Below, one piece after another: positions 12,752 to 39,581 of a DNA stretch of 64,000 nucleotides. Each line of letters starts with the position of its first letter. The first letter of the stretch is position 1. The notes under the pieces are model-generated. The model searched no databases and was not told the DNA's origin. It saw only the letters and a list, made by a program, of their open reading frames with translations. Source of the DNA: Orbicella franksi (lineage: Eukaryota). Location: contig OZ116698.1 of assembly GCA_964199315.1 (NCBI GenBank), positions 23,994,001 to 24,058,000 of the forward strand, given 5' to 3'. The position numbers and the translations under genes were made by a program.

Positions 12752-13128
12752 CTAAAACGTCGCTTCACCTCCATCTTCGTCGCCACTCGCACCGTAATTT
12801 TCTTTTCCTCTCTTTTCTTTTTCAGTCGGTGTGGGTTGAAACAGTGGATTTGTAGCCACTGGGGCACCACCATCTCCCGTAACACTGGCGGTTGATTCAT
12901 ACAGGTGGTTTACTACAGCACCAACACCGCCCATCTCTGAAGAACTACTTGATTCATACAAAGGATTTGAAGCTCCTATTGGACCAGGTCGCCCTGTAAG
13001 ACTTGCTGAGTCATACAGTGGATTTGCTGAAACCATTTTGGTCTCTGGTTTGAACGTCGTGAAAGTTGTCTCCATTTCATTGTCACTGCTCTCTGGTGAT
13101 GCTGGATGGTCATTCTCGGTGCTTTCCA
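12752..13128 (-). CDS. Last coding exon: cytoplasmic tail with NPLY/NPLY/NHLY/NPLF
   Basis: ttatccag|TG; ends GGEATF* (TAG at 12754-12752). Confidence 0.82.
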
Positions 13129-37100: not shown

Positions 37101-39581
37101 TAAACTTTCGGCTTTGAAACACTGGAGAATGTATTTTCAGAAACGGAAGGCTTAATGTGGGTAACTTTGTCCCATCCAACGAATCCAGCGAATTAGACAT
37201 TTCCAGATATTTGCTACTGAAACGCTGCAATCTTAACAAAACTTGCTGAAACCTGTTTAGTGAGAAGGAGAAATGGATCGAGAACTTGAATGGAAGGTGT
37301 AAGCGGAATCCATCAGGCACAGACGACCCTAGTGTCTTGAAATATTCCTTAATCTCGGCGTCCTGTTGACTGACAGGAACCTTTCTGAGATTGTGAAGAA
37401 GGTTCTTAATATTAAAGTCACCCGGGAGATTTTTTGGCAGCTGCTTACTTACGTCATCGATAATTCCAAGTATTGTGTCTAAAGAACGAAGAACTTTCTT
37501 GAACAGGGTCTCCAAACCACTAAGCTTTGTCAGACTGTGCTGTAATTTCTTGATTCTATCTATCAACGATGTCCAGTCGTTAGCACGAAAACTCAAATCT
37601 CTGGAGAAGCCGATTATCTTTCTGGTGGCCTTAATGGCTTGCAAAGGAAGAGTCAGTTCTTTCAAAAAACTGTTAATTTTTCTGGCAAAGTCTGTGAACT
37701 TATCAATGTTTAACGGAATATACCTGGCGAGCGTTGCTCGGAATTTCTCGATTTCCCTAGTAATTACACTTGCAATACTGTCGAAGGTTCTGAGAAGTTC
37801 ATCTCCAGCATCTGCAACAGTGTGAATAAGATCTTTTGGAATGTCGTTTTTAAAACTTGCTGAGACCTTGAACGCAGCTTTGCCCTTGGCTACATCAAAA
37901 GGAATCTTGAGAATGTGACCTCTAATCAACGCGTAATTATCAAGATTAATTTCAAATTTTCCACCGAAAAGTCCAACGCGTAACTCGAGTTTATTCAAGA
38001 ACTGAATGACAGTTTCAGCACCTAACCAGTCTCCCCCAACAACCTTATCCCAGCGCTTCACTCGGCCGATTTCGTAGCTGCGAGGGCGGAGCTCTGGTAT
38101 CAGGGCACGTTTGCGGCGATGAATTACTCTACGCTTGGTACGTAAATCTATTGCTCTGCTATGATTGCCATGGTTTTCAAGGAATTCTTGTATTGCCGAG
38201 TCCAAGGAGTCATCCTTGTCGGCGTGCCACATTGCTTGCTCCAATCCTAGAACTACTGATTCAGTCAAGTTTTGGTGGCGATCAATAAAAACATTGACTA
38301 CTGCCGTCTTGACTTCCTTGTGTTCATCTTGGTTCAAGGCTGTCATCAGATGTCGGTCTGTGTGCTTTGGAGACATTTTTCGCATAGCTGAAATCACCGC
38401 TGATCGAATATCAGAGTTATCGTGCTCAATGTGTTCGAGAATGACTGGAAGTCCGGAGTGATGACCAAGATTTCCAAATGCCCAAATGTGGTCTCTCAGG
38501 TGTGATTCATATTCCATACTTTCCGGATGATAAATGCTTGACTTGTTTCGGTACCTGTTGTGAATCATCTCAGCAACGCTATCGCTTAAGGTTTCATTGT
38601 ATCCTGCTCTTTTTGCTTTTTCTGTAAGTCCAGCCAAGACCAGCATTGCTGTAGCTGTAACAGCTTCTTCTTTGCCGTCTTCCATCGTCAGATCAAAAAG
38701 GGCGTTAAAGAGACTAGAGTGCAGTGGTCCGTCTGGTAGGTACAAAATTGATATCAGCAAAGTCTCGTATTCTTCGCTGCTGAGAAGCCTTGGATAATCT
38801 GTCTTTACGGCGTATGCTAGGGTACTTTGGGCTTCATATTTGCCGTGCGCAGCTAGAGCGGCTAAATAAACGGCCCATGAGGTTAGGTTTTGGTGATTTC
38901 GATTTTGGACCAACCTTTTGACTGCTCTGAATACATTTTTATCATTGCGAACCATGTGGTGCAGCTCATTCGTACAATAACCAACTTCCCGCTCTTCAAC
39001 GGTGTCGTCTACAAAACAGCGTAAGACCTCGTACAAAGGTCTTGTTTTCTTCTTTTCCTTGCTTATCTCTGACACTTTTATTTTGTCTGTGTCATCAAGC
39101 AGTAAGCTGTCTCTAGTAAGAGATTTTGTTGTCTTGAGATGTTCGTTCCAGGCAGTGGAGCGCTTGGAACGTTGATGTTCAGGACCAGAGCACGATATTA
39201 AGGTCAGTTTGCTGTATCCACTGGTTGACATCTCTATATCCTGTTTTGCGAAGGCTTTAAAATTCTCTGCCCTTGGGTGTCCTTTGGCTGGCCTGAAGAA
39301 TGCACTTGTGGTGCGGTGAACGTTATCTACTTTTCCATCTTTAAGATGCACATGAACGCTATGCTGAGACTGAACCTTGTGTTCTCCTTTCGGCGGAGCA
39401 CCATCTGCAAATTGCTGGTAGTCGAAGTTGGTCCAGGTTCGATGGAGATGAGCGTGTGTATCATTTAAGGATAGCACATTGTACTTGGTTCGGAAGATAC
39501 CAGAATCATCGTACTCTTCTACCTCGTAGGTGTTGGCTCTATGCGCGTCCCTCAGATTGACTTGAAAAGCACCAACGATGC
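12752..39581 (-). CDS. Giant single-pass membrane protein (>=6,660 aa): LLTP/vitellogenin-like N-domain, helical region, ~30 FN3-like repeats, FG-GAP-like propeller, ZU5/GPS-like module, Calx-beta, TM, NPxY tail; 5' exon(s) not found
   Basis: Twelve exons with GT-AG sites and consistent phases: 39581-27537, 27363-25883, 25457-24815, 24357-23818, 23646-23457, 22505-19169, 18779-18276, 17573-17356, 16958-16800, 15165-14719, 13916-13873 and 13128-12752 (TAG). They sum to 19,985 nt with no internal stop or frameshift. Confidence 0.9.
13873..13916 (-). CDS. 44-bp exon of the giant gene (juxtamembrane basic segment)
   Basis: gttttcag|A...T|gtaagt; phase 2 to 1, which bridges the neighbouring exons (TATKRRRQETEIPH). 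Confidence 0.75.
14719..15165 (-). CDS. Exon of the giant gene: Calx-beta domain plus transmembrane helix
   Basis: tttacag|T...AA|gtatgt; 447 bp, phase 2 to 2. Calx-beta pattern VLRSKGSLGDITVEW...SGNVSMTDGQ...QLENPTGGALL, then hydrophobic WIITTISACAASVIVLFAASCGI followed by RYKK. Confidence 0.85.
16800..16958 (-). CDS. Exon of the giant gene carrying the GPS-like CHLTQF motif
   Basis: cattctag|G...AG|gttcta; 159 bp, phase 2 to 2. Translates (W)FDAALTCPEPWSHVNRSMKLLEVHVCHLTQFSFFFSFY. Confidence 0.8.
17356..17573 (-). CDS. Exon of the giant gene: ZU5/GAIN-B-like region
   Basis: caacag|CAA...TG|gtaaat; 218 bp, phase 0 to 2. Motifs FKFVKPIKL and LYLWD..NETW. Confidence 0.85.
18276..18779 (-). 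CDS. Exon of the giant gene: last FN3-like repeat and start of the ZU5-like domain
   Basis: tttgacag|GTG...aag|gttcgt; 504 bp, phase 0 to 0. Motif GTLDVPKGAV. Confidence 0.85.
19169..22505 (-). CDS. Exon of the giant gene: FN3-like repeats, FG-GAP-like propeller, Cys-rich module
   Basis: cttgcag|TTGG...cag|gtataa; 3337 bp, phase 2 to 0. Motifs YGVSVAV, LGQAFAL, FGHSISL; CPPNHF...CQPCEEGRKS...CSVC. Confidence 0.9.
23457..23646 (-). CDS. Exon of the giant gene: FN3-like repeat
   Basis: ttctgcag|GT...aag|gtaaca; 190 bp, phase 1 to 2. Confidence 0.88.
23818..24357 (-). CDS. Exon of the giant gene: FN3-like repeats
   Basis: tttttag|GA...cag|gtgaga; 540 bp, phase 1 to 1. Confidence 0.88.
24815..25457 (-). 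CDS. Exon of the giant gene: FN3-like repeats
   Basis: ggatag|GTT...cag|gtacaa; 643 bp, phase 0 to 1. Confidence 0.88.
25883..27363 (-). CDS. Exon of the giant gene: FN3-like repeats
   Basis: ttttcag|GA...aag|gtgagc; 1481 bp, phase 1 to 0. Confidence 0.9.
27537..39581 (-). CDS. Giant exon (12,045 bp, phase 1-1): LLTP-like domain, amphipathic helical region, beta-rich domains, first ~17 FN3-like repeats
   Basis: Acceptor cttctcaacatcag|GC and donor caag|gtaacc, within the 4033-codon ORF. LLTP-like motifs: GIVGAFQ; EEYDDSGIFRTKY; AMLVLAGL; IWAFGNLGH..GLPVI; IRSAVISAMR. Repeats carry DxTPP..G.V.DG and F.D.ESG..Y motifs. Confidence 0.9.

Follow-up and report, generated by a model that had tools for sequence, protein, structure and literature searches.

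A giant gene with a lipid-transfer head

One question raised by the genome of Orbicella franksi is whether a large lipid transfer protein (LLTP) can be fixed to the cell membrane. Lipid transport, yolk formation and some forms of innate immunity depend on LLTPs, and to our knowledge all characterised members (MTP, apoB/apolipophorin, vitellogenin and the clotting or immune derivatives) are soluble. The 64,000 nucleotides of contig OZ116698.1 analysed here (positions 23,994,001 to 24,058,000; hereafter the window) contain, on the minus strand, a gene for which an earlier note, made from the letters of the DNA, had proposed a giant, membrane-tethered, vitellogenin-like receptor. Our analysis points to an old family of giant type I membrane glycoproteins of animals, so far uncharacterised, to which the window gene belongs as an anthozoan member. 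As a whole, including the mechanism proposed below, this reading is favoured tentatively and falls a little short of probable; the gene structure, the architecture and the family assignment are given with high confidence. In the orthologs the predicted order of parts (signal peptide, LLTP head, amphipathic helices, stalk, ZU5/GAIN-like domain, Calx-beta, transmembrane helix and tail) is that of a type I protein. By modelled fold and by profile the protein is a real member of the LLTP superfamily, and one that would break solubility, the one property common to all the characterised members. Instead of the secreted or endoplasmic reticulum-lumenal soluble form of that superfamily, a C-terminal transmembrane helix and tail were found in the window gene and in its relatives.

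The giant exon lies in a minus-strand stop-to-stop open reading frame (ORF) of 4,037 codons (27502-39612), and the full-length proteins of Oculina and Montipora map to ten further colinear blocks of the window besides it. The gene was modelled by splicing guided by homology to the Oculina ortholog, together with a fixed-anchor junction search. Eleven exons were obtained, spanning 39581 to 12755, and every junction was canonical (GT-AG) and in phase. The spliced model has 6,655 codons without stop or frameshift, the stop codon is at 12752-12754 and the 64-kb window contains zero N. The intact, phase-consistent frame of the earlier note was recovered, with 11 exons and 6,655 amino acids in place of 12 and at least 6,660, a trivial difference. 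Its end coordinate, 39581, also agrees with the first exon base set by the acceptor (AG at 39583-39582, with a pyrimidine-rich tract), which opens the exon in phase 1 and is the point where homology to the relatives starts, with G|IVGAFQ. Two near-equal solutions were found for the final junction, and the frame of the tail is the same in both.

Exon A, the giant exon (27537-39581; 12,045 nt; model amino acids 1-4015), was delimited by the ORF, the acceptor and the junctions. The second half of the LLTP barrel and the helical domain of the LLTP module come from this exon, as do the amphipathic region, two family-specific segments (mid1 and mid2) and FN3-like repeats 1-17. The exon is 93% identical to P0001, the closest relative, and 72% to the Oculina ortholog. 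Exons B (25883-27363; 1,481 nt), C (24815-25457; 643 nt), D (23818-24357; 540 nt) and E (23457-23646; 190 nt) were placed by the junction search. Exon F (19169-22505; 3,337 nt) carries the end of the FN3 array, a region of ~650 amino acids, repeat 29 and the start of repeat 30, the remainder of which lies in exon G (18276-18779) with the first strands of the ZU5/GAIN-like domain. The middle of this domain is encoded by exon H (17356-17573) and its end by exon I (16804-16958). Exon J (14696-15172) encodes the Calx-beta-like domain, the transmembrane helix and a basic stop-transfer stretch, and exon K (12755-13128) the cytoplasmic tail. All of these exons, and all features of the gene given below, are on the minus strand.

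One possibility, raised already in the earlier note, is that the locus is chimeric, the giant exon and the exons for the transmembrane helix and tail coming from different genes. There is no transcript evidence from the window, and the annotation of Desmophyllum splits the locus into two models. However, FN3-like repeats 17, 22, 24, 25, 26 and 30 are each cut by a proposed junction, all in phase, and the juxtamembrane ZU5-like domain is divided among three exons. The same parts are joined in the gene models of Oculina, Montipora, Nematostella and Dendronephthya. In addition, a relative (P0072) has the whole architecture in an uninterrupted ORF of 6,694 codons on a 20.6-kb contig, colinear with the window model over amino acids 1-6558 at 36% identity; from its sequence, this contig would seem to resemble a spliced mRNA. 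Since repeats and ZU5-like domain straddle the junctions, the models of the relatives join the parts and P0072 holds them all in a single ORF, the locus is read as one gene, and the probability of two separate ones is negligible.

Fold and profile evidence for the LLTP head

A second question is whether the N-terminal region has the LLTP fold, a point on which the earlier note had made its proposal depend. The motifs on which it had relied (GIVGAFQ, EVEEYDDSG...TKY and FGNLGH) were all found in the frame of the giant exon. The C-terminal half of the LLTP N-sheet, a beta-barrel (39013-39581; model amino acids 1-190, with GIVGAFQ and EEYDDSG), was assigned through Pfam matches of the orthologs, AlphaFold modelling and Foldseek, and includes a conserved RSKRS site (39157-39171); the coding sequence for the first half lies beyond the window. 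The LLTP alpha-helical, HEAT-like domain follows (38098-39012; model amino acids 191-495, with FGNLGH; HEAT_2, 27.3 bits). It ends at a conserved dibasic site, RRKR|A (38104-38118), in which R640, K642, R643 and A644 (R-x-K-R|A) are nearly invariant among 42 aligned sequences. Pfam Vitellogenin_N was found in full-length orthologs with 64.3 bits (Dendronephthya, profile positions 3-527 of 590), 44.6 bits (Nematostella), 40.7 bits (Montipora) and 28.8 bits, the cutoff being 24, and in sea-star and sponge relatives with 63 and 40 bits.

An AlphaFold model was obtained for residues 1-900 of the closest full-length ortholog (Oculina P0066), using the alignment of 42 sequences. The barrel (residues 40-283) was predicted with a local confidence (pLDDT) of 70-86, and the helical domain (residues 334-644) with 85-94. 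When this model was compared with the Protein Data Bank (PDB) by Foldseek, ranks 1-9 were all LLTPs (E-values from 8e-20 to 6e-7), including MTP (6i7s, 8e-20), lipovitellin (1lsh, 2e-17), honey-bee vitellogenin (9ens) and apoB100 (9bd1, 9e9r, 9ea7 and 9bd8). The global template-modelling (TM) scores were low (~0.3), as expected from the floppy, low-confidence parts of the model. Together with Vitellogenin_N in the orthologs, these matches bear out the LLTP-like N-domain and settle the doubt about its fold. PDB sequence searches with the N-terminal region, whether with a single sequence or a profile, returned only HEAT/alphaRep proteins and no LLTPs; the link to the LLTPs needed Pfam on full-length orthologs and the comparison of folds.

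A profile covering the part of the LLTP module encoded by the giant exon (the first ~150 columns were dropped, too few sequences being available) was also searched against 1.84 billion representatives. Only 31 proteins were found at E < 1e-3, and the distant matches are Vitellogenin_N proteins of 830-1,060 amino acids, indicating that the family is a true but very divergent LLTP branch. In four proteins of 830-1,060 amino acids, P0154 from the myxobacterium Archangium sp. (WP_329729805.1, 828 amino acids, which passes both Pfam models) and the metagenomic P0153, P0155 and P0156, Vitellogenin_N (77-102 bits) was accompanied by HEAT_2; by these matches they look like LLTP-like N-modules outside animals. 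After the helical domain of the window gene lies a short beta-meander (37813-38085; model amino acids 500-590; strands 652-729 of the P0066 model) of ~80 amino acids, with pLDDT below 50 and a hydrophobic-moment peak at 170 degrees. Of the LLTP lipid-cavity sheets the model offers no other candidate remnant.

Amphipathic helices and a family-specific middle region

The ~1,000 amino acids of amphipathic helix proposed in the earlier note were recovered at 34693-37812 (~1,040 amino acids, model amino acids 591-1630) from the hydrophobic moment, which peaks at 100 degrees with z = 17.2 against shuffled sequences. This region is low in Pro and Gly and has weak Pfam matches to Apolipoprotein A1/A4/E and Baculo_PEP_C; in the model of P0066, helices were predicted at residues 733-899 with low confidence.

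The middle region (33013-34665) is composed of mid1, which is beta-rich (amino acids 1640-1985), and mid2, which is hydrophobic and beta-rich (amino acids 2020-2190), with a conserved KRKRS dibasic site between them (33634-33648). Their alignment has 30 invariant columns among 18 sequences. No Pfam or PDB sequence match was obtained for either segment in profile searches, and homology searches found them only inside this family. A stand-alone search with the middle region returned ~45 proteins of 480-625 amino acids, which were considered as a new domain context and rejected, because they are exon-sized pieces of the same family, from genomes with an interrupted giant exon.

The stalk and the membrane-proximal domains

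About 30 FN3-like repeats had been proposed, and a repeat hidden Markov model counted 30 units of ~108 amino acids: 28 consecutive ones (21506-33012; model amino acids 2191-5300; exons A to F) and two more after the stretch of ~650 amino acids. Pfam fn3 reached 43.2 bits in the giant exon, 29.9 bits in exon B (cutoff 25) and 88.9 bits in a sponge relative; the individual repeats are weak, and hence they are called FN3-like. The region after the array (19553-21505; amino acids 5301-5951) contains a Cys-rich module and has weak FG-GAP-like similarity, and its profile had no match among PDB sequences. A propeller reading of this region was not adopted, as the FG-GAP_2 matches (E = 0.02-0.04) were below threshold. 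The model contains 90 N-glycosylation sequons, a number that would fit an ectodomain.

A self-cleavage module of the ZU5/GPS type had also been suggested. The C-H-L-T motif of exon I (16871-16882) belongs to a CHLTxF pattern that is invariant in 14 sequences at 23-91% identity, together with a second Cys and a Trp. The AlphaFold model of this domain (~200 amino acids, mostly beta; pLDDT 72, global confidence pTM 0.71) places CHLT at residues 178-181, in the turn between the last two strands (172-179 and 182-189). Foldseek matched this model to the ankyrin ZU5 domain (3ud1, E = 2.4e-4), to 3f59 and 3g5b (E = 2.5e-3; UNC5b is among the ZU5 matches) and to the GAIN domain of BAI3 (4dlo, E = 4e-3), with TM-scores of 0.35-0.54 for ZU5; the profile of the domain had no match among PDB sequences. 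The invariant motif, its position in the last turn and the fold match uphold the suggested module, and HL|T within CHLT is a putative autoproteolytic site.

The domain is compared with two known systems. As in the GAIN/GPS region of adhesion GPCRs and polycystin-1, H-L-T stands after a Cys and is followed by x-F, in the turn between the last two strands, and the domain sits just outside the membrane at the base of a giant ectodomain; the fold match is to subdomain B of the BAI3 GAIN domain. In contrast to that region, Pfam GPS is not matched, the four-Cys/two-Trp pattern is partial (two invariant Cys and one invariant Trp), the helical subdomain A is absent and the domain precedes a Calx-beta-like domain and a single transmembrane helix instead of a bundle of seven or eleven. 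ZU5 domains (ankyrin, UNC5, PIDD and the FIIND of NLRP1) are its best structural match, and some of them self-cleave at an HFS or SFS site in the equivalent position; however, known ZU5 domains are cytoplasmic and that of the family is extracellular, with HLT instead of HFS and no Pfam ZU5 match. The CHLT domain was also seen in other giant proteins (P0077-P0083 and P0101), several of which have PKD/REJ-type Pfam domains in place of the LLTP head. As it is found in giant proteins without that head, it is an independent, mobile module of the juxtamembrane region.

Directly before the membrane lies the Calx-beta-like domain (14832-15134), another component named in the earlier note. Residues 6150-6794 of P0066 matched more than 10 Calx-beta repeats of ADGRV1 by BLASTP (best E = 9e-9), and ADGRV1 proteins (E-values from 1e-22 to 1e-9) were the sole named family matched in the C-terminal search. 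One transmembrane helix (14748-14816) was identified by hydropathy, followed by a basic stretch and a tail of 142 amino acids. The tail has two NPLY motifs (13013-13024 and 12956-12967), NHLY (12899-12910) and NPLF (12839-12850), all in exon K, so that the predicted helix and NPxY-rich tail stood, with VCHLTQF upstream of them. Most relatives have NPx[YF] in their tails, among them cnidarians, amphioxus, sea stars and a bivalve, against a chance expectation of ~0.03 per tail estimated from residue frequencies. The C-terminal EATF was considered as a PDZ ligand and dropped, since it is not conserved in the orthologs.

Selection and the missing 5' end

The intactness of the gene had been taken as a sign of selection. 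Comparison of the giant exon with the 93%-identical P0001 gave dS 0.155 and dN 0.043 (synonymous and non-synonymous divergence), that is, dN/dS 0.28, with values of 0.21-0.31 by region; the flanking non-coding DNA is 75-93% identical to that of the same relative. The ratio of 0.28 supports that view and indicates that the frame has been under purifying selection, at least until the two copies diverged.

Contrary to what had been assumed, the window does not hold the complete gene for the 6,700-residue protein: it lacks the 5' exons, which encode the signal peptide and one half of the LLTP barrel, and the locus comprises all but the first one or two exons. The orthologs carry 115-150 extra N-terminal residues, corresponding to the signal peptide and the strands with which the barrel begins. 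In the AlphaFold model the 5' exons supply about half of the strands of the barrel; without these exons the protein would be unable to fold its head or to be secreted. The exon before the giant one is 7.9 kb upstream of it in Desmophyllum, and at the sister locus L003, which encodes P0001, the two 5' exons (L003 11593-11883 and 17908-18168, minus strand) are ~10.2 and ~16.5 kb upstream. The proximal intron upstream of the giant exon (39613-44372) is colinear with L003 up to 44372, beyond which no match to L003 or to its two 5' exons was found in the window. The break is sharp, at 44372 of the window and 10111 of L003. Within the same intron, L003 is ~3.2 kb longer (L003 2943-7694, 4.7 kb with a Pao-peptidase ORF, versus window 40436-41979, 1.5 kb). 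The DNA past 44372 is rich in transposons, with nested elements. Either the 5' exons were pushed beyond 64000 by insertions or they have been lost from this copy.

Loss would make this copy a 5'-truncated, non-functional paralog, in which rearrangement or transposons beyond 44372 removed the promoter, the signal-peptide exon and the first barrel exon from a frame that has not yet decayed. In keeping with this, colinearity stops abruptly at 44372, the two 5' exons could not be traced in 24.4 kb upstream (versus 7.9 kb in Desmophyllum and 10.2 and 16.5 kb at the sister locus), and the family has tandem paralogs, three of them in Oculina on one contig. On the other hand, 6,655 codons without stop or frameshift and a dN/dS of 0.28 indicate constraint, the nested transposon DNA past the break, with long terminal repeats (LTRs) 98% identical, is consistent with a recent insertion whose only effect was a longer intron, and the window stops at 64000. 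A dead copy is thus considered quite unlikely.

An old animal family

The architecture, unrecognised in the earlier note, is not peculiar to this locus and proved to be that of a conserved metazoan family annotated in RefSeq as "uncharacterized protein". All the named ones among the 62 closest proteins are anthozoan, and the member in Nematostella is LOC5514171. Three paralogs lie on one Oculina contig (G001763, G001773 and G001781), a case of local duplication, and in Desmophyllum another FN3-like giant gene stands head-to-head with the family gene (L001 1-1565, minus strand). Distribution was searched with the C-terminal 1,345 amino acids, Vitellogenin_N being taken from precomputed annotations. 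Giant proteins with Vitellogenin_N were found in Branchiostoma (amphioxus; P0085, 5,221 amino acids), the sea stars Asterias (P0087, 7,606 amino acids) and Acanthaster (P0088, 7,569 amino acids), the brittle star Amphiura (P0093, 7,338 amino acids) and the gastropod Babylonia (P0095, 5,145 amino acids), and all five have a C-terminal transmembrane helix and tail. For P0085, P0088 and P0095 the Vitellogenin_N annotation was reproduced in Pfam runs of our own. The architecture therefore recurs in Anthozoa, sea star, amphioxus and gastropod, and brittle-star and sponge models share parts of it; cadherin, PAN and EGF modules are added in relatives.

The N-terminal profile reaches sponges, and a Sycon transcript and a crinoid protein were also matched. 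In the sponge Oscarella lobularis, XP_065846792.1 (7,772 amino acids) is colinear with the window model over amino acids 1-597 and 943-5186 and has Vitellogenin_N and a strong FN3 array; its predicted C-terminus consists of cadherin domains with no transmembrane helix. No vertebrate, insect or nematode member was among the proteins returned, although no systematic search for them was made, and the only named vertebrate matches were ADGRV1. Every named member is annotated as "uncharacterized", "hypothetical" or "predicted", and literature searches, including those by accession and LOC number, found no study of this family, so that the earlier note's reservation about an already characterised family found no support. 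The LLTP module is known and the membrane-tethered form would be new to the superfamily; the family is annotated in databases and has no study that we could find.

These relatives in sponge, corals, sea anemones, echinoderms, amphioxus and molluscs would bear on the origin of lipoprotein systems in early animals. One speculative and rather improbable scenario is that the family is a separate, very old LLTP branch, a tethered "lipoprotein plus receptor" that would predate or parallel secreted apoB and vitellogenin, was present in the common ancestor of sponges, cnidarians and bilaterians and was lost from the standard model animals. If so, that loss would explain why the family has been overlooked.

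Proposed mode of action and its rivals

How might such a protein work? A signal peptide like that of the orthologs would direct it into the secretory pathway. Furin-type convertases would then cut it at two conserved dibasic sites, one behind the LLTP helical domain and one separating mid1 from mid2, as they do in apolipophorin II/I and insect vitellogenins, and self-cleavage would take place at the invariant HL|T turn, as in GAIN domains, the fragments staying non-covalently joined. Going by these motifs and by analogy, such proteolytic maturation is moderately probable. The LLTP head and the amphipathic helices, held ~100 nm from the membrane (30 FN3-like domains at ~3.5 nm each), would bind lipid or ligands that bear it, for example lipoprotein-like particles or the surfaces of microbes. 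Through its NPxY motifs the membrane stub would be linked to phosphotyrosine-binding (PTB)-type adaptors, as in the LDLR family or in integrin beta tails, leading to internalisation, and the non-covalent junction would allow shedding of the ectodomain. The preferred reading is that of a surface-tethered device that may capture lipid or lipid-bearing ligands and be internalised or shed. Its function in lipid capture and endocytosis, argued by analogy, is put forward tentatively and as somewhat unlikely when taken on its own; the notion of ligand and receptor in one chain, with lipid capture, microbe recognition and shedding, may be called plausible.

Like MTP, vitellogenin/lipovitellin and apoB/apolipophorin II/I, the family has an N-terminal barrel and helical Vitellogenin_N module and, in the orthologs, a signal peptide. 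As in apolipophorin II/I (apoLp-II/I) and insect vitellogenin, a dibasic cleavage site follows the LLTP module and, as in apoB, a long amphipathic region of lipid-associating type lies downstream, although here it is all-helical, whereas apoB has beta-belts. Unlike other LLTPs, the family has a single-pass anchor with a cytoplasmic tail and more than 4,000 amino acids of FN3-like and other adhesion-type modules, is without detectable C- and A-sheet cavity domains, vWD domain or DUF1081, and is very divergent in sequence. The type I topology and the NPxY-type motifs in a short tail recall the LDLR family (LDLR, LRP1, megalin and the vitellogenin receptor), and a functional association with lipoproteins would be plausible; in contrast, Pfam LDL-A, EGF and YWTD were not found in the window gene, FxNPxY is absent and the lipoprotein-like module is within the receptor chain itself.

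Several observations weigh against the capture device. The window copy alone is below the Vitellogenin_N threshold and matches only HEAT_2 (27.3 bits), because the exons for the first ~150 amino acids are outside the window, and those N-terminal residues found no match in 39613-64000 by tblastn or profile searches. Pfam open-beta-sheet and DUF1943 gave no match in the window or the orthologs; the classical lipid-cavity sheets were not detected, so lipid loading may differ from that of vitellogenin, apoB and MTP. That these sheets went undetected is the main weakness of the lipid model. For the juxtamembrane domain the Foldseek E-values are modest and the TM-scores are ~0.4, and Pfam GPS (none at E < 1), ZU5 and Calx-beta had no match in the C-terminal exons or the orthologs. 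The tail motifs lack the FxNPxY context of LDLR (no Phe at -2) and vary in number, and the tail of the Montipora model has none.

The undetected cavity sheets would suit a structural or adhesive surface protein of the apical matrix or of a cell-cell or cell-substrate link, comparable to transmembrane mucins, the ankle links of usherin and ADGRV1, or FAT cadherins. In such a protein the LLTP head would be a knob binding protein or matrix, the NPxY motifs would connect to the cytoskeleton as in integrin beta tails, and the autoproteolytic junction would serve as a mechanical fuse. Thirty FN3-like repeats with Calx-beta-like and ZU5/GAIN-like domains are the building blocks of giant adhesion proteins, relatives have additional cadherin, PAN and EGF modules, and ADGRV1 is the sole named family matched by the C-terminal part. 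ADGRV1 (VLGR1) is likewise longer than 5,000 amino acids and membrane anchored, with significant Calx-beta-like similarity, and usherin is giant and membrane anchored with a long FN3 array. The window protein differs from both, with only one Calx-beta-like domain, no seven-helix bundle, no laminin or pentraxin modules and an LLTP head that is unique to the family. Moreover, the LLTP module and the 1,040-amino-acid amphipathic region are conserved (dN/dS 0.21-0.29), lipid-associating apolipoproteins typically have amphipathic helices this long, and the colinearity of head and helices from sponge to coral is hard to explain for a mere spacer. A purely adhesive role is accordingly judged unlikely, if still to be taken seriously.

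The cleavage sites allow another explanation, a secreted-lipoprotein precursor in which the anchor would serve biosynthesis and sorting only. Furin and autoproteolysis would free the LLTP/helical part, or else the entire ectodomain, to carry lipid in soluble form, for example in yolk, mucus or the skeletal matrix, much as apolipophorin II/I arises from a single precursor. Insect apoLp-II/I and vitellogenins are known to be processed by furin, the dibasic sites are conserved exactly at domain borders and the CHLT site is invariant. However, GAIN-type cleavage normally leaves the fragments associated, and a stalk of more than 4,000 amino acids, a transmembrane helix and a tail with conserved NPx[YF] would be costly as a pro-region, yet they are kept across phyla. 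A mere precursor is thus improbable.

If the capture device is correct, an LLTP module fixed to the membrane on a stalk of ~100 nm would be a new mode of action for the superfamily; the conserved convertase sites agree with this, as do the adaptor motifs and the self-cleavage motif of GAIN type. For corals it would provide a candidate surface molecule for the uptake of lipid or particles and for contact with microbes or symbionts.

Mobile elements flanking the gene

Transposon remains flank the gene on both sides and include BEL/Pao, a Mutator-like fragment and an integrase fragment. A BEL/Pao-type LTR retrotransposon was found upstream on the plus strand (47951-53984), with 202-nt LTRs (47951-48152 and 53783-53984) that are 98% identical. 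Its ORFs, for gag (DUF1759), aspartyl protease, reverse transcriptase, Peptidase_A17 and integrase, are fragmented; judged by its LTRs the element appears to be young, yet it is already broken. It is bracketed by arrays of ~84-nt tandem repeats (46577-47143 and 54071-54322), the second being the reverse complement of the first, and its insertion site may have been a palindromic satellite or another element whose ends are inverted. At 62765-63808 (plus strand), an ORF that matches a parvovirus-type phospholipase A2-like domain (PF08398, 27 bits) stands directly before an ORF with an integrase core fragment; running toward the window end, both could be part of another mobile or viral-derived element. 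Two minus-strand features lie on the 3' side of the gene: at 4503-5078 an ORF that matches the PML C-terminal domain with 82.6 bits, and at 8668-9048 a fragment of a Mutator-like transposase (87.2 bits).

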